Shown here: positions 2,267 through 12,935 of the stretch, one piece after another
Layout: each line of letters starts with the position of its first letter
Numbering within the stretch: the stretch's first letter is position 1
Source: Hormiphora californensis
Taxonomy: Eukaryota; Animalia; Ctenophora
Direction: 5' to 3'
Assembly (NCBI GenBank): GCA_020137815.1
Contig: CM035353.1
Location: forward strand, 3,596,001-3,660,000
Length of the DNA stretch: 64,000 nt
Made by a program: the position numbers and the translations under genes
The notes under the pieces: model-generated
The model's input: only the letters and a program-made list of their open reading frames with translations
Told to the model about the DNA's origin: nothing
Database searches by the model: none

Positions 2267-5200
2267 ATGGCTATCGATCCGCGATCGAAAGGGGTAAGGT
2301 CATCATATAATTATATATACATATTTAACTAGCAAAAATCCCTTTATAAGTTTAATATTTTCTTGTTGAGACATGCAGTGTTCTCAAAGCTTCAAATTAT
2401 TGATTTAGTACCATTATGTATCGCTTTTTTTATTACATGACCCCCTTTCAGACATTTTTGGAGCGCCTTGACCAGGGACCTGTCATTGGTGATGGTGGAT
2501 TTGTGTTTGCCCTGGAGAAACGGGGGGTGGTGAAAGCTGGACCTTGGACTCCAGAAGCTGTAATTGAACATCCTGAGGTAAAAGTTGGTTACAAAGTCAC
2601 CCCTTTTATTGCATGAGCAATAAAAACAGAGGGGTAATTTCATTACCAAAGGTAAACGCAATGCGTTCTTTTCTCACGTTCTTTACTATAATACTTTGAA
2701 GCGTCATGATGCCTGAATGGCTGATATTGGGGTTGGAATTAACCCCGCATACTGCACTATGTGTTGCACGTTTTGGGTGAGGTTCGTGTTCGAGGGAATG
2801 CAAAAAGGATATTTGCCATTTGGCCAAATTTGGGTAAAAAATAATTTTTAGAATTTCAAAACCTTTCTATCAGGCTGTAAGGCAGCTGCACACAGAGTTT
2901 GTCCGAGCCGGAAGTGACGTGTGTCAGGCATACACATACTACGGGAGCGAGGACAAGCTAACTAATCGGGGGAACCACGCTGGCCAATATGGGGTAAGTT
3001 AATAGGGGGAACCACGCCGCGCTGGTGCGCTGGCCAATACGGGGCTATATATGGATGGGAACAACCTATATACAGGGTGGGCCAGAAACATGGAGCCACT
3101 TGGAGATAAAAGTTGGAAAAATACAATACTCTCTCTATTGTACGGATCCAAATTTCAACGTGTTACCTTGTCAGTTGACAGGCTGATAATTGTTAGGAAA
3201 GGGTGACTCTCTGTCGATCTCAATCCTCAGGGGACACTTTTTCTAGTCAATAGACCGTGAAAATTACACTGTACATGGGAGAGGGCAATTTTGCATTTGC
3301 GGGCATCGCACTATAATAGACGCAGTACCCACGTACTATAGACGCATTATAAACGCATTATAAACGCATTATAGACGCATTATAGACACACGCAATATAG
3401 ACGCAATTTCGTAAGCAGCACTATAGACGCAATATAGACGCATTATAACAGCAATATAAACGCATTTTTATAGACGCGACGCAGTATAGCCGCATTATAG
3501 GCGCACTACCCACCCCAAAATCACCTTATAGACGCACTATAGACGCATTATAGACTGACTATAGCAGCACCATAAACGCTACATAGACCCATATAGACGC
3601 ATTATAGAAGCATTATAGACGCAAATCGCTTTTTATAGACGCCGCGTCTATAAAAAACGTGCTTTTTTAAGAAGCACTATAGACGTACTCAGACGCACGC
3701 TGCGATATTTGAGGCGCAGTTGGGCGAACTATAAACGCATTTTTGTCGCATATAAAAGGAAGCAGTATACTATATATATATATATATAAACGCATTATAG
3801 ACGCATTATAGCCGCATGTGTGCGAAATCGATAAAGACGCAATATAGACGCAAAATAAGAAGGAGACATGGAGAGAGAGGGATCAGGGAGGGAGAGGGAA
3901 GGAGAGGGAAGGAGAGGGAAGGAGAGGGAAGGAGATGGAAAGATGGAAAGATGGAAAGAGAGGGAGGGAGGGATACAGGGACAGAGACAGAGACAGACGG
4001 ATAAAGACCTGAGACAGAGGGACAGAGTAAGATGGAGAGAGAGAGTAAGATGGAGAGATAGTGAGATAGGGACGGAGTGAGACAGAAAAAGACAGAGATG
4101 GAAACAAACGGACAGAGACAGACGGACAAACACGCGCTTACTATCTCCCTCTCTGTCTCACTCTCTTTCCATCTTAATCTCTCTGCATCATACTTTGTCC
4201 GTCTGTATCAGATCTGTGTCCATCTGTCTCAGTCTGATCTGTCTCTGTATCCCTCCCTCCCTCTCCCTCTTTCCCTCTCCTTCCCTCTCCCTCCCTCCTT
4301 CCTTCCCTCCCTCCTTCCTTCCCTCCCTCCCTCTTCCTCCCTCTCTTTCTCATTTTGCGTCTATATTGCGTCTATATTGCGTCTTTATCGATTTCGCACA
4401 CATGCGGCTATAATGCGTCTATAATGCGTCTATACTGCTTCCTTTTATATGCGACAAAAATGCGTTTATAGTTCGCCCAACTGCGCCTCAAATATCGCAG
4501 CGTGCGTCTGAGTACGTCTATAGTGCTTCTTAAAAAAGCACGTTTTTTATAGACGCGGCGTCTATAAAAAGCGATTTGCGTCTATAATGCTTCTATCATG
4601 CGTCTATATGGGTCTATGTAGCGTTTATGGTGCTGCTATAGTCAGTCTATAATGCGTCTATAGTGCGTCTATAAGGCGATTTTGGGGTGGGTAGTGCGCC
4701 TATAATGCGGCTATACTGCGTCGCGTTTATAAAAATGCGTTTATATTGCTGTTATAATGCGCTTATACTGCGTCTATACTGCTGCTTACGAAAGTCCGTC
4801 TATATTGCGTGTGTCTATACTGCGTCTATAATGCGTCTATAATGCGTCTATAATGCGTTTATAGTACGTGGGTACTGCGTCTATAGTGCGATGACCGCAA
4901 ATGCCAAATTGCCCATGGGAGAGTGGACTGTATTGACACCTTAGTTATCTACAAGTGGCTCCATGTTTCTGGCCCACCCTGTATTATTGTTGTTCCCATG
5001 TCTATCTCTCCATACAAAAACTCATTATCACAATAACTTGATCACCACACAGGTTTACAAGGTGAATGCTGCTGCCTGTGAGATTGCCGGGAGTGTCGCT
5101 AAACCAGCAGGTTGCCTTATTGCAGGGGGAGTTGGTCAGATACCAGCGTACCTTACCACCAGGGACAAGGAGAAGGTGAAGGCTGAAGTGAGGAAACAGT

Positions 5201-8200
5201 TGGAAGTGTTCAAGGATTATAAAGTGGATCTGATGATCAGTGAGGTAGGTGTTAACAAACTCGATCAATATGTAGTTGATCTATACAAATTAAAAACGAC
5301 AGCAGTTTTTAAGGTCTATACACATGTTTTATGGTGCCCCACGATGAGGCACCAATCATCAGTAGACAAAGATCAAAATGAGAATGAATTGGGATAAAGT
5401 ATGACTCCTTCATAAAAACAGTCAGTCAAACGTTCCTAGTTAGAATTAGTAGCTCCATTTCACGTCACATCTTCGTATCTTGGACCTCTAGATTCCCCAG
5501 TTTCAAAGTACGTCAACCATTTCCCTTTCTTGGAGTGTGTAATCTGTATTCCATTTTGATCATTGTTCCTCAAAACCAGACGTCGTACGTGTCCTCAGAT
5601 CCACAAGAGTGCTCAACCACAAATAAATTGAGGGAGCATTGCATTATAGCGAGTTTAGTAGATTGATGACAAGATAGATATCCTGTCCCTTGGTCCGAGA
5701 TCAACAGAGTGCTCTAGCACGGGGTTAGCCGGCGAGCAGTTTATACAAATTAAAAACGACAGCAGTTTTTAAGGTCTATACACATGTTTCATGGTGCCCC
5801 ACGAGGAGGCACCAATCATCAGTAGACAAAGATCAAAATGAGAATGAATTGGGATAAAGTATGACTCCTTCATAAAAACAGTCAGTCAAACGTTCCTAGT
5901 TAGAATTAGTAGCTCCATTTCACGTCACATCTTCGTATCTTGGACCTCTAGATTCCCCAGTTTCAAAGTACGTCAACCATTTCCCTTTCTTGGAGTGTGT
6001 AATCTGTATTCCATTTTGATCATTGTTCCTCAAAACCAGACGTCGTACGTGTCCTCAGATCCACAAGAGTGCTCAACCACAAATAAATTGAGGGAGCATT
6101 GCATTATAGCGAGTTTAGTAGATTGATGATGTAGTTGATCTATAAATAACACAAGATATTCAATATATGTTATAGTTTCATGAAAATATCGTTTAAAATC
6201 GTTTCAAACTTTTCAACACTACTTTAAACAAATTAATTTGAGGATTCGTTTCGCTGCCCCTCGTTAATCCTTCTGAGACTTCTGTTTATCCCCTCTTTTA
6301 AGACAAGACAAGAGAAGACGTGTCTGGTGTTTTTCTAAATAAACAGATCTCAGAGGACCTCGTTGGGTTATAACCAAGGACGCCAAGACTTGCAAGGAAC
6401 GGTTCCTCGCGCCTCTATTTACAGGACAGGATGGCGGGTGTGGCTACCCAGAATGTTGTTATTACGTGCAAGCAGGATTTGAAAGGTGAGCTCCTTACCA
6501 TGAGTTTATCTGAAAAGTGTAAAGGTATAAGCATGGCGAAATCCCTGAGTGATGGAGCAGATACCCCACCAACTGGTGGAACAGTGAAAGTATTATGGAC
6601 ACTCCTGGTGAAGATTTATCAGGCTCTTCCTGATGGCCCTGGGCACCGATGCCCAACCTCATCCTCTGAGTCTACTGTCTCTTTCACTGCTGATGACTTG
6701 AAGGAAACATTTGCCAAGTTGAAAATGGATCTACTGGACACACTACCTGATTTAGTAGCACCTAAGGTCAGTGAAATTCTGGGACCTAAATCACCGTCAC
6801 ATGAAACTACTCCGGGGTTTGGAAATGTGCCAGTGCAGTCTACCTCCCCTGCAACGCCTGTTAAGAGATATCTCAGTATCAAAGACAAAGGAGATGATGG
6901 AACCACACCAATGTGTGAGACTCGGTGGAGTAACGTACTCAAGCCTCAGGTCGAGACAGCACTGATGAGTATTCCAGTTCTGGACCTCTCTGTGAACAAG
7001 AGACGTACCCACCTGCACTTTGAAACTGATGATCAGCTTGAGAAAGCTAAGGAGAAACTTTCTCCGTTCTTAGAGGTATCTACCTTTGTGGAGAAGGAGA
7101 AGAAAAAGGACCCCCGTATTATGATCAATGATTTGGACCAGGATTTGCTTGACAATGAGCGATTGATGTCGGCAATAGTGAGTGACAAGAATGAGGAGGT
7201 GAAGAAGTTGAATGATGAAGGACATATGATCAAGGTGGTACACGTCAATAAAGCAGGGAGGTATGCAGTGGTCCAAGTAACACCGGAGGTTAGGAAGGCG
7301 ATTTCTGAGAAGAAGGACAGACTGTTCCTGAAACTTCGTCAACACGTTGTGAAGAATCGATTCTATGTGACACAGTGTTATCACTGTCAACGTTTTGGAC
7401 ACGTTGCTGGATCAATCTACTGCCCGAATAAAGACAAGTCTGCTGTTTGTGCTTTCTGCACTGGAGATCATGATACCAGACAATGCAAGGCGAAGCTCGA
7501 CAATGATGTAGGCAGAATGAAGTGTGCTAACTGTGAGCAAAGTGGAAAAGAAGATAAGAGGCATGCAAAGACCCATCCGGCATCAAGTGGTCTCTGCCCC
7601 TTCTACATCAATGCTAGAGCTAGACTCATGGAAACTACCAGTGGTGTTACGTCGGAGGAAAAAAACGTGTACCTGACGAGGGCATGGGAAGACCTGAGAA
7701 CAAAAAGGTTTGGAAGATTGGCACGTTAAATGTTCACTCAATTATGAACAAAACGTCGGGGGTTATAACCCACCTAGAAGAAAAGGGATGTGGCATATGC
7801 TTGATTCAAGAAACCTACCTTAAACAGAGTGACACGGCGAAGCTACAAGAGATCAAAGATTACGGGTGGAACATTTTCTCCTCACCAAGGGCAGAGCGTG
7901 CAGGAGGTGGCATTGGAATACTTTACAGGAATGGTATCAAGATAAAGCTGTCGCAGTCAAAGAAAAGCTTCAAGACTTTCCAGGTGCAGGAAGCCCTTAT
8001 TGGTACAGGCGATGATCTTACACGGGCTTGCAATATTTACAGGCCGCCGTACACGGGAAAGGCAAGGTACACCGAGGCACATTTTATGGAGGAATTCTCA
8101 GACTATCTGTCTGAGCTATTGACCAAAACTGGGTACCCTCTTCTAATGGGGGATTTCAACTTTCAGGTACATGATAGTACCAACTTCTATGCAAAGAAGT

Positions 8201-11200
8201 TACTGAGTCAGCTTGATTCTCTAGGATTTGAGCAGCTGGTCCCAAAACAGCCAACGCATACTCGAGGAGGAACTTTGGATCTCATTCTAAGTCAAAAGGA
8301 GAGAGTTGAGAAGATAACGTCGGTGGAAATCTTCCCTGAAGGAACTACTTCTGACCATTATCTGGTCTTAGCGGAACTGTGGATTGATACACCTAGTGGA
8401 GACTATACGTCGCGGGAGCAGGTGGAGATGTACCGAGATTTTAAAGGAATTGATGTGGAGATGTTTCGGTGTGCCTTGCAAACTGTGGACTGGACTGATG
8501 TATTAAACTCAGATTGCCCGGAACGTGCCTTGGAAATATTCGTCAGTATTATGGAGGACTTCGTTGACAAAACAGTCCCTCTTAAGAGGAGAAGAAAAAA
8601 GGGCAAGAAGGACAAGCCATGGAGAAACAATCCAGAGGTGCTCAAGGTTCTTCGTGAACGGCGGCGAGCAGAGCGTGCTTGGGAAGGGAACAAGACACCC
8701 TTGACGAAGAAACAGTTCAATGATCTCAAGAGACAGTTTGGACGGGTGGACAAGAGTGCGAGGATGGAATATGTTAAAGATGACTTGGAGCAGGCGAGAG
8801 ATGATCCTAAAGCCCTTCAGAGAAAGCTTGATCGTCTCCTTGGTAAAAGTGAGACGTTATTACCGGAAACTGGAAACAAACAGAAACTGGCTGAGGATTT
8901 TGCAGATTATTTCCATGGAAAGGTTGAGGATATTCGGACAACTGTCAGAGAGGAGCGGAATCACCTACAGAAAATACGAGCACAAAATTCCATATAAAAA
9001 TGTGTTTGACGGACTGTAACAGTCCGTCAAACACATTTTTATATGGAATTTTGTGCTCGTATTTTCTGTCAGAATCTGTATAACACGCACGTGAATTTGA
9101 GCCGCGGCGCGGCGCATCTGCACGTGCGGGTTTTCAAGAGAGAGTGAGAGACAAACGTACAACGTTAATGTGCGTCTCTCTCTTTAATCTCGCACGTGAA
9201 TTTGAGCCGCGGCGCGGCGCATCTGCACGTGCGGTTCTTCCAGATAGAAATTCCAAATAGAAATCCCAGATAGAAATTCCAAATAAAAATGTGTATGACG
9301 CCGTGTTAGAAGAGAGGAGACACATGTTCTCCAGTCCTCTCTTGAGGAATTTGAGGAAATCTCTGTGGATGAGTTGATTAGGACGGTTGTCGGTTAAGGA
9401 CATGCCGGATAAGACTTGTGATCTTGACGTAGTACCCACGTGGTTGGGCTGTCTTGAGGAACTGGCTCCAGTTCTTATGAGGATTATCAATCTGTCTCTT
9501 ACACATGCTGATGTGCCTAAGATGCTTCAGCAGGCAGTGGTGTTTCCAACGATCAAGAATTCCTATGGGGACAAGGATTCTCTGACGAACTACCGACCGG
9601 TGTCTAATTTGTCGTTTATCTCCAAACTTCTGGAGAAGGTAGTTCTTGAGCAACTCAATGCTTATCTCACCACTAATGCACTTTTGAATAAACACCAATC
9701 TGGTTATAGGGTTGGTCATAGCTGTGAGACCCTTCTCATGGGAATGTTCGATGATCTTCTTCAAGAAGTGGATAAGGGTAATGTCATTGGCCTCTTTCTC
9801 CTTGATATGAGCGCTGCCTTTGACACGGTGGATCATGGGAAGCTGAAGGATGTACTTGAGAGGAGGTTTGGAGTATGTGGATCTGCCCTAAAGTGGTTTT
9901 CTAGCTATCTTCAGTCGCGGAATTTCAGAGTCAACGTTGGTGGAAAACTTTCGAGGATTATTGAGCTTGTTTGTGGAGTTCCCCAGGGATCTCTACTGGG
10001 GCCTGTCTTGTTCCTGTTGTATATTGAAGAGCTCCAGGATCTGGTCAAGCCGTACGGTCTTCGGATCAAGTTGTATGCGGATGACTCCCAACTTTACATT
10101 AGTCTTGTACCTACGGATGAGGATAACTGGAAACTGGCCAAAACGAGGATTGAGGAGTGTTTGTCAAGTGTGAAGGCGTGGATGAACGATCACTGGCTTA
10201 AATGTAATCAAGCGAAAACTGAGTTCCTGCTTCTTGGAAAGAGCAGTGCCCTGGATAAGATGGAGTTTGTGCCTACTGTTGATTTTGGTGGTGTGGAGAT
10301 TTCTCCGATGGAGTGTACAGGAAAGACAGGAAAAACACTTGGGGTTTACTTGGACACGAATCTATCTATGGAGAGACAGGTAAACAGCGTGAAGAGGCAG
10401 TGTGGAATGCTCTTGAAGAACCTGTGGCAGGTGAATCGCAGCCTGGATATTCCTACTAAAATCCTCCTGGTCAAGCAACTGATTGTTTCTCGGCTTGACT
10501 ATTGCAACATCCTATACGCTGGATTGCCAAAGAAGCTTCTTGAAAGCCTTCAGAGGACATTGAACTCGTGTGTGAGGTTCATCTATAACCTTCATGGACA
10601 TCAAGATGACTATTCTCAGTATCTTAAGGGCACTCATATCCTACCTATGGAGCAGCGTGTGGAATTCAAGGCATGCTTGATGGCGTTTAAAATTGTTCAT
10701 AACCTAGCCCCGGATTATCTCTGTGACCAAGTACCAGTTGAGGACTTGGAGGCTGTTCGAACCACCCGTGGAACTGCAACGCCTGATCACTACAAGCTTA
10801 AGTATCCTAAGCTTTCGAGTATTAACGCCAACTCCAAGTTGAGAAGGAGGTGACCGTCTGTCTTCCTACCTGAAGTGTGGAATGAGCTCCCCCTGGAGCT
10901 TCGATCAGTTGAGTCAGTGGATCTGTTCAAGTCGAGGTTAAAGACAAGATTGTTTGTGGAAGCATTCGGAGCCAGCGGAGGATGAGGTTCCTTGTTTCGC
11001 CTGCTTTCATCAGGTATTTCGCCTAGCTTGTATTTATTTTCTTTTGGTTCTGTTTTACCGCTCATGGTAAGGTTTTTATTGGCATTTTATAGCATTTTTT
11101 CGAGTGAAGCACGAGTGGAAATGATATTTACAGACATTTTCTACCATCTAATGTGGACGTTTTTCCATCTATATCAGTCTGTTATCTCATCTGGACAGTT

Positions 11201-12935
11201 ATGTGAGCCGAGAGTGTTTAAATCAGTTTAATTCAGTGTTTTGGGTCTACCATTTTTTGATATACGTCTTTAAGTAACCGCTCAGATCGCCTCTCAGTGT
11301 CAGTGTCAGTTCTACTACACTGGCCCTGTGAGGTAAGGGCGGCATATAAATAGACATATTATTATTATTATTATTAAAACAGCAGCGGAGAGAGAATTGC
11401 CTTTAAAATGTTTTTAGTTTCCCTAGTTAGGCTCATCATCAATCTCCCCCTCCCCCTCCCCCTCCCCACCCACCCCCGACCCCCTTCCCCCTCGGCAGAC
11501 CTGTGAGACGGTTGAAGAGGTCGAATGGCATGTGGAGGCGATCAAGGAATACATGCCCGGCACCCCCATCTGTGCATCTCTCTGCATCAACGAACATACC
11601 GACATCCAGGGAGTGCCCACAGGGGAGTGTGGCGTGAGGCTGGTGAGAGCGGGGGCTGACGTTGTCGGGGTAAACTGTTATTTTGACCCATTCCAGTCCA
11701 TTAATTCTGTCAAGAAGATGATCAAAGCGGTTAAGGATGCCGGCCTCAAGGTAGGTGCACTGCATAGTGTATTCAGGTATATTATTACGAAGTACAGTCG
11801 GACCCCGATTTTGGGGCCCCCGATTTAGTGGCACCCCGATTTAGGGACAGAATTTTTCCCCCCGATATAGGAAATTAACCTTATTTGACCCCGATTTAGT
11901 GGACACCCCGATTTAGTGGACAAGAGCCTTTCCCCTGAGGGTGTCCCTAAATCGGGGTCCGACTGTATATTATTACGAAGTCACCCCTATAATAACTATT
12001 CCGTGAGCTTTTGCGGAGGGGTAATTTCATGTCCAAATGTCTCCATTAATTTCAGGCTCACTTTATGACACAGCCACTGGCAATGTGGACCCCAGATGCA
12101 GGTGTCCAGGGATTCATTGATTTACCTGAGTTCCCCCTTGCATTTGAGCCGCGGACTATAACCCGGTTTGAGGCGGCACGTTACGCACGGGAGGCTTTCG
12201 AAGCAGGTAGTTTAATAGACTTTGCACCCGAACTTTCTTCAACGATCGATCTTTTTGTGAAAAAAGATCGAGTCCTATACAAATTAATTTCATCCTAATA
12301 TTTCTTCTACCAAGTGAAATCTACCAACTATGTGTTCTGCTTGGTGACAAAGTCGTGCGCTGACAAGGGAGGGGTAACTTCGTAATACCAAATGTAACCA
12401 TGGTTACTAACAGCTGTAACCAAATGTTCTGCAGGAATCATGTTTATTGGTGGTTGCTGTGGTTTTGAATCCTATCACATTCGAGCGGTGAGCGAGGAAC
12501 TATCAGCGGAGAGAGGGGGTTACCTCCCAGCGAATTGTACTAATTGGGGAAAAGCACTGGAGCTTAACACGAAACCCTGGGTAGGTTTAAATACTGGTCC
12601 CTGATTGGCTAATAACCAATCACGTGACCTAAATAACGAGTTCTGATTGGTTGTTTACTTGTTTCGGTCGGTTCTTGGTATAACATTATTGTTACACACG
12701 TGATGTGATCACATAGCACGTTGTATTATCACAAACTTGAATGCATATATAGGGATTTAGGGGAAGCTAGGTCTAATGTCGTTTTGAATGTTCTCTGAAG
12801 TTCCAGATTCACATAAGATAATCATGCAGGTACGAGTGAGGGCAAAAAGGGAGTACTGGGAAAATCTTAGACCCGCAACCGGGAGGATATATTCTCCGAC
12901 AATGAGTAAACCTGACGATTGGGGTATTCTACCAG
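2267..12935 (+). CDS. BHMT: Betaine--homocysteine S-methyltransferase, multi-exon. Exons: 2267-2293, 2452-2577, 2874-2993, 5053-5244, 11499-11750, 12056-12206, 12435-12580, 12830-12935. A last exon probably lies in the low-quality sequence after ~13.1 kb.
   Basis: GT-AG exons join in phase. They give [72 protein letters not shown] and [16 protein letters not shown], all BHMT hallmark motifs, including the three Zn-binding Cys. Confidence 0.95.
3073..4981. mobile_element. Tc1/mariner-type MITE in BHMT intron 3 (about 270 bp without the nested insert)
   Basis: 37-bp TIR CAGGGTGGGCCAGAAACATGGAGCCACTTG(G/T)AGATAA at both ends; TA on both flanks (3071-72, 4982-83). Confidence 0.85.
3283..4914. 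mobile_element. 1.63-kb foldback element nested in the MITE above
   Basis: Termini GGGCAATTT...AAATTGCCC. TSD is ATGGGAGA (or CATGGGAGAG if the termini are GG/CC). Inverted arms of ~580 bp are built of TATAGACGCA-like subrepeats, around a GA-rich then CT-rich core. Confidence 0.85.
5314..5367 (-). ncRNA. Second hammerhead copy, core mutated (GAAA to AAAA)
   Basis: Same architecture 460 nt away, but reads ...GGCACCAT-AAAAC-ATGTGTA. The catalytic G12 is lost. Confidence 0.7.
5774..5827 (-). ncRNA. Minimal type-I hammerhead ribozyme, intact core
   Basis: Minus strand reads GTCTA-CTGATGA-T-TGGTGCCTC-CTCGT-GGGGCACCA-T-GAAAC-ATGT-GTA^TAGAC. Stem I is GTCTA/TAGAC, with the CUGAUGA box, a 9-bp stem II, GAAA, a minimal stem III with palindromic ACATGT, and a GUA cleavage triplet. 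Confidence 0.8.
6201..6242 (+). other. Genomic copy of the ctenophore spliced-leader exon, fused to the LINE 5' end
   Basis: GTTTCAAACTTTTCAACACTACTTTAAACAAATTAATTTGAG matches, from memory, the cydippid ctenophore SL ending in AATTAATTTGAG. It is followed by GATTCG rather than a GT donor, so it is a processed leader and not an SL-RNA gene. Confidence 0.8.
6431..7729 (+). CDS. LINE ORF1, gag-like nucleic-acid-binding protein with three zinc knuckles (432 aa)
   Basis: [19 protein letters not shown] and CANC..H..C motifs, directly upstream of APE/RT. Confidence 0.88.
   Translation: MAGVATQNVVITCKQDLKGELLTMSLSEKCKGISMAKSLSDGADTPPTGGTVKVLWTLLVKIYQALPDGPGHRCPTSSSESTVSFTADDLKETFAKLKMDLLDTLPDLVAPKVSEILGPKSPSHETTPGFGNVPVQSTSPATPVKRYLSIKDKGDDGTTPMCETRWSNVLKPQVETALMSIPVLDLSVNKRRTHLHFETDDQLEKAKEKLSPFLEVSTFVEKEKKKDPRIMINDLDQDLLDNERLMSAIVSDKNEEVKKLNDEGHMIKVVHVNKAGRYAVVQVTPEVRKAISEKKDRLFLKLRQHVVKNRFYVTQCYHCQRFGHVAGSIYCPNKDKSAVCAFCTGDHDTRQCKAKLDNDVGRMKCANCEQSGKEDKRHAKTHPASSGLCPFYINARARLMETTSGVTSEEKNVYLTRAWEDLRTKRFGRLAR
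7684..10985 (+). pseudogene. LINE ORF2 (AP endonuclease + reverse transcriptase), disrupted
   Basis: APE motifs TLNV, IQET, IYRPP, MGDFN, TLDLI, SDH. RT motifs [30 protein letters not shown]. Broken by a MITE plus inverted arm (8967-9305), a 7-bp insertion (~9389-9395) and a premature TGA at 10851; the frame continues as [20 protein letters not shown] to 10985. Confidence 0.9.
9020..9305. mobile_element. 286-bp MITE inserted in LINE ORF2
   Basis: Near-identical reverse-complement copy of the same length at 45147-45432. Imperfect TIR CAGTCCGTCA / CACGGCGTCA-TACACATTTTTA. Confidence 0.85.
11795..11965. mobile_element. MITE with TIR CAGTCGGACCCCGATTT, TA-flanked
   Basis: Intact TIRs. Other copies at 40130-40292 and 45557-45707; partial copies near 15470, 30730, 30970, 43280, 57190 and 62895. 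Confidence 0.85.

Follow-up and report, generated by a model that had tools for sequence, protein, structure and literature searches.

A hammerhead-bearing repeat family in the genome of the comb jelly Hormiphora californensis and its likely Penelope-like helper

Background

What is the 460-bp repeat that lies, in nearly two copies, within an intron of the ctenophore Hormiphora californensis, by what means did it arrive there, and does the hammerhead motif carried by each of its units have a part in its spread? The stretch of DNA analysed here (the window) comprises 64,000 nucleotides, from position 3,596,001 to position 3,660,000 of contig CM035353.1 (assembly GCA_020137815.1), and all positions given below without a locus name are those of the window. 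In the initial annotation, made from the sequence alone, the repeat was read as a retrozyme-like tandem element predicted to release a 460-nt RNA that can be circularised. Minimal hammerheads were reportedly found in the pseudo-long-terminal-repeats (pseudo-LTRs) of Penelope-like elements (PLEs) by Cervera and de la Pena in 2014 and by Lunse et al. in 2017. Non-LTR retrozymes, and PLEs as the helpers proposed to move them, are already known (PMC7229834, PMC7761336, 10.64898/2026.07.22.740005), and the role of the hammerhead motifs of PLEs was termed a mystery in a 2020 review (PMC7761336). Our analysis indicates that the 460-nt family is very probably a PLE-dependent, hammerhead-bearing, non-autonomous retroelement, and we are just as confident that a retroelement of the non-LTR retrozyme type left the insert in the window as a dead copy.

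A young family of dispersed, partly tandem insertions

When the unit, numbered from the first base after the predicted ribozyme cut, is aligned with the window, the insert reads as unit positions 110-460, then 1-460, and then 1-37, or 1.84 units in total. The period of 460 bp given in the initial annotation is confirmed by the 99% likeness of 5282-5581 to 5742-6041, and the element is non-coding, as had been supposed, with no open reading frame (ORF) of more than 44 amino acids within 5282-6129. The units in the window differ at two bases only, namely a change of G12 to A (5330) and a change in loop II (5345). A perfect 16-bp direct repeat, ATGTAGTTGATCTATA, brackets the insert, and the last four bases of the element (TATA) are also the last four bases of the duplication at 5270-5285; it is because of this overlap that the length of the duplication had been given as a range of 11-16 bp. 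The insertion is recent.

The unit matches about 100 pieces in the genome (110.7 Mb in 45 contigs), which can be grouped as about 37 loci on 12 contigs, so that other genomic copies, the lack of which would have told against the initial annotation, do exist. These loci were fetched with 400-nt flanks, 38 loci were examined, and at least 54 hammerhead-bearing units of the family are listed in the genome. The G+C content of the element is 41.5%. Twenty-five insertions stop at unit position 35-44, nearly all of them at 36-39, with the end ...GUUUUUAAUUUGUAUA, and the 5' ends are scattered over the unit as a result of variable truncation. Insert lengths range from 0.28 to 11.2 units, most copies being 0.3-3 units long. 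Target duplications of 10-17 bp abut the element at 12 loci, often with 1-5 nt of microhomology to its terminal UAUA, and no A-rich or microsatellite tail was found on the insertions examined. In the array L044, which is 6.8 units long, the six full units are identical and the whole array lies within a 14-bp duplication; this array was either laid down in one event or grown by exchange from an insert that was already longer than one unit. The 460-nt family is thus young and dispersed, and its insertions have the anatomy left by target-primed reverse transcription; the template either exceeds one unit in length or behaves as if it did. The circular or multimeric template proposed in the initial annotation agrees with an insert of more than one unit, but such inserts, and partial tandems in general, are also typical of PLEs themselves (PMC8557442), and no circular template is demanded by them.

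Two further features of the insertions were seen. In the array L037 (G000:C4:5002018-5007167), 11.2 units long, the five 3'-most units are identical, and each of the six 5' units is separated from its neighbours by 6-18 changes, with 1-nt deletions frequent among them; assembly error, two separate events or error-prone late synthesis could be the cause. The 5' ends of insertions cluster at unit positions 98-102 (L064, L056, L061, L049 and L059) and 361-369 (L050, L043, L047 and L032), and the first of these clusters (..AUAUCUAUCU..) is often directly adjacent to target repeats resembling (TATC)n or (TAGA)n, suggesting 5' joining by microhomology.

Three hammerhead families with exchanged stems

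The minus-strand type-I hammerhead motif and its predicted cuts lie where the initial annotation had placed them. The intact motif, read on the minus strand from 5827 to 5774, has the order GUCUA, CUGAUGA, U.U, stem II, GAAAC, stem III, GUA and UAGAC. Stem I is GUCUA/UAGAC; stem II begins with U.U at positions 10.1/11.1, continues with 9 bp and is closed by a 5-nt loop; and stem III consists of 2 bp with the loop AUGU, followed by the cut triplet GUA. The two cuts predicted in the window (5779/5778 and 5319/5318) are 460 nt apart. This motif is the only full match to our descriptor in the 64-kb window, and its sequence is identical in 40 of the fetched copies. The conserved hammerhead core (C3 U4 G5 A6 N7 G8 A9, G12 A13 A14, the pair A15.1-U16.1, and H17 other than G) is present in it and, with few exceptions, in the 60 copies of the family that were aligned. 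The 3'-most copy in the window (5367-5314) lacks this core by the change G12A (5330); it is the sole one among the 60 without GAAAC, reading AAAAC, and is probably inactive. The pair G10.1-C11.1, which is highly conserved among hammerheads, if not absolutely, is absent: it is replaced by U.U in families A and B and by A-U in family C, which are described below. The U-U singled out as unusual in the initial annotation is therefore real, but it belongs to the family as a whole and is not a private defect of this copy.

The palindromic ACAUGU that had been read in stem III required a change of register, in that it is by the self-complementary ACAUGUGU, with eight pairs including two G.U, that A15.1-U16.1 is held in place. 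Because stem III is unfavourable in the monomer (+0.5 kcal/mol), and the intermolecular eight-pair helix of ACAUGUGU is favourable (-8 kcal/mol), a dimeric mode of action is the natural expectation. Such a mode has been described for the hammerheads of newt, axolotl and PLEs (PMC7229834, PMC7761336). Minimum-free-energy folding of the motif, or of two copies of it, did not recover the hammerhead junction, as is expected of a non-canonical core, and a metagenome scan for related motifs yielded 121 matches; as only two of them pass a stem test, this yield is noise.

A genome-wide search for the core followed, after a gap of 12-42 nt, by GAAACAUGU gave 144 matches, against 8 for the reversed control. 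These matches represent three families with a common core and stem III. Family A is that of the window element, with the stem I given above, a stem II of U.U and then nine G+C-rich pairs, and the cut triplet GUA. Family B has the stem I GGUCGC/GCGUCC and the cut triplet GUU, and its stem II has the U.U and the same first three pairs as family A, with a distal part that is different and partly compensated. Family C, which belongs to a PLE, has the stem I CAGUU/AACUG, a stem II of six or seven A-U-rich pairs and the triplet GUA. A compensatory exchange of C-G for U-A distinguishes stem II in a subfamily of family A, and across the families 11 of 17 pairs change on both sides (all five of stem I and 6 of the 10 of stem II) in an alignment of eight rows. 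In the same alignment 86.7% of cells are paired, compared with 67% after shuffling and 33-57% after a shift of the partners by one to three columns. Covariation in stems I and II, on which the initial annotation had made its reading depend, is thus present. An invariant core beside fully exchanged stems is what would be predicted of a hammerhead.

Family B occurs as single dispersed copies (L086, L087 and 33 places), in which the GUU triplet is followed by a palindromic hairpin, AAUACAGCUGUAUU. In many of them the first two or three bases of CUGAUGA are replaced, as would fit a core that was truncated, or fused to a leader, at its start. Another locus, L068 (1470-1602; G000:C11:3990824), contains an inverted pair of canonical minimal hammerheads with G10.1-C11.1 and the self-complementary ACAAUUGU. 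This pair, which probably belongs to another PLE family, has the best score in the genome with the Rfam model RF00163 (26 bits, under the cut-off).

A likely Penelope-like helper

Of the 31 near-exact copies of the family C hammerhead, 30 are exact; they lie on the same strand as matches to GIY-YIG, about 260 nt downstream of these. These copies belong to a 2.35-kb PLE family, two members of which stand in tandem 2351 nt apart. Its ORF contains reverse transcriptase (RT) motifs (..YDIEAFYPSI.. and ..YRDDGLII..) and, near the C-terminus, a GIY-YIG domain (Pfam). Look-alikes of the protein in the Atlas carry RVT_1 and GIY-YIG, and one cluster of look-alikes is commonest in Ctenophora. A search for a Penelope element with RT and GIY-YIG, as suggested together with the initial annotation, has thus revealed one in the same genome with the same hammerhead core and stem III and nearly the same 3' end.

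The 3' end of the PLE, ...AAACUUCCUUGUUUUUAUUUGUA, lies 35 nt past its own cut site, and that of the older subfamily of the 460-nt element, ...AAACUUCCGUUGUUUUUAAUUUGUAUA, lies at a distance of 37 nt from the cut. The last ~25 nt of the two are nearly identical, and the 50 nt that they have in common are 76% alike. Copies of the PLE show duplications of about 13 bp, head-to-head arrangement and a 52-nt tail. To have only the 3' end in common with an autonomous element is, for a short element, the classic mark of parasitism on the reverse transcriptase of a helper. The near identity of its last ~25 nt to the 3' end of the 460-nt element makes the family C PLE the likely helper. Mobilisation by its protein would also agree with the similar length of the duplications (~13 bp) and the similar tandem and fold-back forms. 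In the window, the 3' terminal module past the cut site consists of the 3' strand of stem I, an 8-bp A/U hairpin (5312-5290) and the end UUUGUAUA, and is presumed to be the site of recognition and priming for the reverse transcriptase of the helper.

Two other candidate helpers were rejected. In the commonest GIY-YIG family (L071-L081) the descriptor found no hammerhead within 1.5 kb, and there are only a loose core-like string and a different 3' end. The long interspersed nuclear element (LINE) next to the insert in the window ends in an (ATT)n tail without likeness to the 3' end of the 460-nt element. A further GIY-YIG locus, L070 (G000:C7:5327020-5330136), has an ORF with the domain at residues 55-92, near the N-terminus. 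This is the domain order of Naiad-type elements, reported for ctenophores by Craig et al., whose ctenophore entries are hammerhead-less Naiads only (PMC8557442).

Possible cleavage traces, leader joins and RNA data

Several insertions of the family have scars at the predicted cut site. Seven extra bases stand exactly between GUA and UAGAC in L045, about six are found at the predicted cut site in L106, and three of the 21 insertion events in the family fall within the last six of the 460 unit positions (455-460), at the cut site. In four fold-back copies flanked by duplications, the inverted arm stops at +4. Such cut-site scars are as expected if a reverse transcriptase often meets an RNA end there and then jumps. 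The extra bases and the ends of the fold-back arms are suggestive of cleavage in vivo, and on these sequence traces we lean, with moderate confidence, towards the view that the hammerhead does cut in the animal; that circular RNA serves as the template seems to us doubtful at best.

Fold-back copies were seen at L042, L062 and L066 (G000:C4:7723547, C12:2023598 and C13:1147994), at C4:7874347 and at C12:815483, with 13-17-bp duplications. They are composed of the reverse complement of unit positions 36 to 4 (33 to 7 in L042), followed by forward positions ~20 to 135, and the copies that were read (L042, L062 and L066) all end at ...CUCGCUAUA (134-137). One idea of their origin is that two cDNAs annealed through the palindromic hairpin.

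A spliced leader joined at an AG beside the cut site was considered as the cause of the ends near +4 and rejected, as no such joins were found. At 165 places in the genome, compared with none in the control, spliced-leader sequence is joined by its 3' end, AATTAATTTGAG, within 0-8 nt of the GAUGA(A/U) of a hammerhead core, on the upstream side. The leader is joined most often directly to CUGAUGAU, at the first base of GAUGA, and many of the joined copies are inverted pairs 55-90 nt apart (examples are G000:C1:834074 and C3:400006/400092). No AG acceptor stands before the core in families A and B, and a jump of the reverse transcriptase onto leader RNA is as open an explanation of these joins as trans-splicing. 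Leader-joined RNAs cannot self-cleave because stem I is absent, yet they were copied, which supports the view that the 3' module alone suffices for copying. Antisense spliced-leader sequence is also found within 20-75 nt of the 5' end of the element in two of about 30 insertions (L055, 356-383; window, 6201-6245), and this proximity may be due to chance or to preferential integration next to older retro-insertions.

The regions 5372-5622, 5594-5760 (with no differences) and 5696-5957 (across the cut site) of the window are represented in contigs of marine RNA libraries, and so is the upstream exon, but not the intron flanks. This coverage fits expression of the element, the contigs carrying neither ends, strand nor back-joins, and circular RNA was not seen in them.

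The window locus

The features of the locus are listed in Table 1. The element lies antisense in an intron, about 35 nt past an exon with a homocysteine S-methyltransferase domain. Only one intact ribozyme is present, and therefore a monomer could not be cut out of a transcript of this copy, so that the release of a 460-nt RNA, as predicted in the initial annotation, could not take place from this copy. Given one crippled ribozyme and the antisense position in an intron, the copy is most likely inert; in itself it is ordinary dead repeat DNA.

Table 1. Features of the 460-nt element and its immediate surroundings in the window
Feature	Position	Strand	Basis
Whole insertion, 848 nt	5282..6129	- (RNA sense)	Unit laid on window; repeat family D1; non-coding
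5'-truncated unit, unit positions 110-460, with intact hammerhead at its end	5779..6129	-	99.4% to full unit
Full 460-nt unit, predicted cut site to predicted cut site	5319..5778	-	Unit laid on window
3' terminal module past cut site, unit positions 1-37	5282..5318	-	Common end of the insertions
Intact minimal type-I hammerhead motif, predicted cut 5779/5778	5774..5827	-	Sequence reading; descriptor; covariation across families
Second hammerhead motif, G12 to A (5330) and loop-II change (5345), predicted cut 5319/5318	5314..5367	-	Alignment of copies
Target-site duplication beside 3' end of element	5270..5285	.	16/16 identical to 6129-6144
Target-site duplication beside 5' end of element	6129..6144	.	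16/16 identical to 5270-5285
Host exon, homocysteine S-methyltransferase domain (Pfam PF02574), ending at GT donor	4963..5247	+	RNA contig spans 5150-5244 and stops there

On the other side of the insert, 72 nt beyond it, begins a plus-strand LINE of the type with an apurinic/apyrimidinic endonuclease (APE). This LINE (6201-11375) contains ORFs with Exo_endo_phos and RVT_1 and has its (ATT)n tail near 11375, and its first ~45 nt (6201-6245) have very high depth in the marine RNA library contigs, as expected of a spliced leader. Upstream of the exon, the intron contains a degenerate 11/22-bp tandem repeat, TGCGTCTATAA, at 4577-4890, with about 27 copies and 62-64% matches.

Proposed mechanism and alternatives

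We propose that the 460-nt element has borrowed a 3' module from the PLE, made up of the minimal type-I hammerhead, the cut site, a short A/U hairpin and the end UUUGUA(UA). The reverse transcriptase/endonuclease of the PLE would recognise this common module and copy the element. The hammerhead, which would be too weak as a monomer with its 2-bp stem III, may pair with a second copy via ACAUGUGU, and the paired hammerheads would then cut multimeric transcripts after GUA. The templates would be the cut monomers, or circles made from them, and the enzyme, on reaching the 5' end of a unit, would continue at the 3' end of the following one, either by template jumping or by running round a circle; passage between units in this manner would give inserts of more than one unit. 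Because of the fillers at the cut site, the fold-back arms that end within 3 nt of the cut and the inserts of up to 6.8 identical units, if each arose in a single event, the dead copies may record the role of the minimal PLE-type hammerhead in vivo, in which the ribozyme cuts, and the reverse transcriptase runs off the cut 5' end and resumes on the next monomer or on a ligated circle. We put this forward tentatively and rate its chances below even. If true, it would be the first mechanistic account of how pseudo-LTR tandems are formed and of why PLEs keep hammerheads.

The same copies can be explained with a passive hammerhead. The element would then still be a parasite dependent on the PLE, its hammerhead being an inherited part of the 3' recognition module, weak or dead, that gives rise to no circular RNA, and inserts of more than one unit would come from the same unexplained tandem-forming step that lies behind PLE pseudo-LTRs. 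The formation of tandems by PLEs is not known to involve a circle. PLEs themselves insert as partial tandems with tails (PMC8557442), and the helper family here does so too, with its tandem copies at a distance of 2351 nt and its 52-nt tail; the 165 leader-joined copies, which were copied without stem I, also suit a module that does not need to cut. Some of the points in favour of a passive hammerhead belong to those that weigh against the reading that we prefer, that of a hammerhead-bearing, PLE-dependent retroelement. U.U in place of the usual G-C at 10.1/11.1 could weaken catalysis, an uncut hammerhead must have survived in every template, at 36-39 nt from the 3' end, and a circle of 460 nt has no excess of structure (-110.4 kcal/mol, compared with -106.3 +/- 5.2 for shuffles; z = -0.8), unlike the circles of retrozymes, which are highly self-paired (PMC7229834). 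Of the insertions, three begin at +1 or close by; two of these lie in (TA)n targets, and the other has GTGTA in common with its flank; microhomology may explain these starts, and we have downgraded them as proof of cleavage. The covariation was sampled from three or four independent lineages only, and the RNA data are low-depth contigs from marine metatranscriptomes only. Likeness to the PLE is confined to ~50 nt (the terminus and the 3' half of the hammerhead), the two elements being unrelated elsewhere, and a supposed likeness of the 5' region of the element to the 52-nt tail of the PLE was rejected (local score 8, against a shuffle mean of 9.3). The Rfam hammerhead models, finally, give no match in the window, either at the gathering threshold or with E up to 10, and RF00163 gives none for this family genome-wide. 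This blank is uninformative because the models also miss the hammerhead of the PLE itself and thus do not extend to this minimal class. What speaks against a passive role is that an invariant core, together with stems whose pairing is preserved by compensatory changes in three families, suggests that the hammerhead fold, and not just a hairpin, has been under selection, and that the extra bases and the ends of the fold-back arms cluster at the predicted cut site. On balance we consider a passive hammerhead unlikely.

Explanations without a PLE fare far worse. A short interspersed nuclear element (SINE)-like passenger of an APE-type LINE, such as the neighbour at 6201-11375, would also be expected to have the 10-17-bp duplications and the 5' truncation, both of which fit target-primed reverse transcription of the LINE type, and a LINE with APE and RT does lie 72 nt away. 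The (ATT)n tail of that LINE is unlike the 3' end of the element, which has no A-rich or microsatellite tail and matches the PLE family instead, and we hold this origin to be very improbable. Even less credit can be given to ordinary satellite DNA produced by unequal crossing-over, with a hammerhead-like motif by chance. The tandem layout, the failure of the Rfam models to score the motif and the possibility that arrays already longer than one unit were lengthened by unequal exchange would agree with it, but satellite DNA does not account for at least 37 dispersed loci on 12 contigs with a common 3' end, target duplications and pieces shorter than one unit, nor chance for a motif that is found 144 times against 8 in the control and covaries. 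The reading of the initial annotation as a non-autonomous ribozyme retroelement is upheld by the dispersed young family, by its target duplications and by the covariation of stems across three families.

Comparison with known systems

Like the non-LTR retrozymes of metazoans (PMC7229834; reviewed in PMC7761336), which consist of non-coding tandem units of 150-450 bp with a type-I hammerhead in each, the element described here has 460-nt units, low G+C content (41.5%), target duplications of more than 4 bp (10-17 bp here) and a PLE in the same genome. It has one motif per unit and is without LTR, primer-binding site or polypurine tract, as is characteristic of such retrozymes. In contrast to most invertebrate retrozymes, in which the hammerhead is a canonical type-I motif with a stable helix III and loop-loop contacts, it carries a minimal motif of the PLE type with U.U at 10.1/11.1. 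It also differs from retrozyme circles in that its 460-nt RNA has no marked self-pairing (PMC7229834), and from long retrozyme arrays in being present mostly as short dispersed inserts of 0.3-3 units.

The hammerheads of PLE pseudo-LTRs (PMC8557442 for the anatomy) are, like that of the 460-nt element, type-I motifs near the 3' end, with a tiny helix III and a self-complementary loop that permits dimers, and PLEs likewise insert as partial tandems or inverted copies (PMC8557442). Unlike PLEs, the 460-nt element has no ORF for reverse transcriptase and endonuclease, and only ~50 nt are common to it and the PLE of the same genome.

Ctenophora appear to be a new phylum for hammerhead retrozymes: no report of hammerheads or retrozymes in comb jellies was found in the literature searched, in agreement with the initial annotation, according to which none was known to have been characterised. 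The parasite and its helper are present in one small genome and have only half of the hammerhead and the last ~25 nt in common, which narrows what the PLE enzyme needs for recognition. The family is young, and the state of its RNA template can be deduced from the scars of insertion, namely those at the cut site, the template jumps and the fold-backs. Furthermore, three related hammerhead families with natural compensatory variation and a conserved U.U at 10.1/11.1 provide a ready set for dimer tests of the minimal hammerhead.

Partnerships of SINEs with LINEs rest on a common 3' end, and a SINE-like element with a hammerhead, Sm-alpha, occurs in Schistosoma. The 460-nt element resembles such pairs in being short and non-coding, in having the 3' recognition end of its helper and in its 5' truncation, and Sm-alpha has a hammerhead as well. 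It differs from them, and from Sm-alpha, in the absence of an RNA polymerase III head and of an A-rich tail, in its multimeric inserts and in its helper, which is a GIY-YIG PLE and not a LINE.

In vertebrates, non-LTR retrozymes derive from PLE pseudo-LTRs and are excluded from introns, according to a preprint of Li, Clavereau and Pollet in 2026 (10.64898/2026.07.22.740005). The 460-nt element fits such a derivation from PLEs, and differs from the vertebrate retrozymes in that it is found in a comb-jelly genome and its copy in the window lies in an intron (10.64898/2026.07.22.740005). In vertebrates the link to PLEs was drawn from the phylogeny of pseudo-LTRs (10.64898/2026.07.22.740005), whereas in H. 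californensis it is given by a common 3' terminus and by the anatomy of the insertions.

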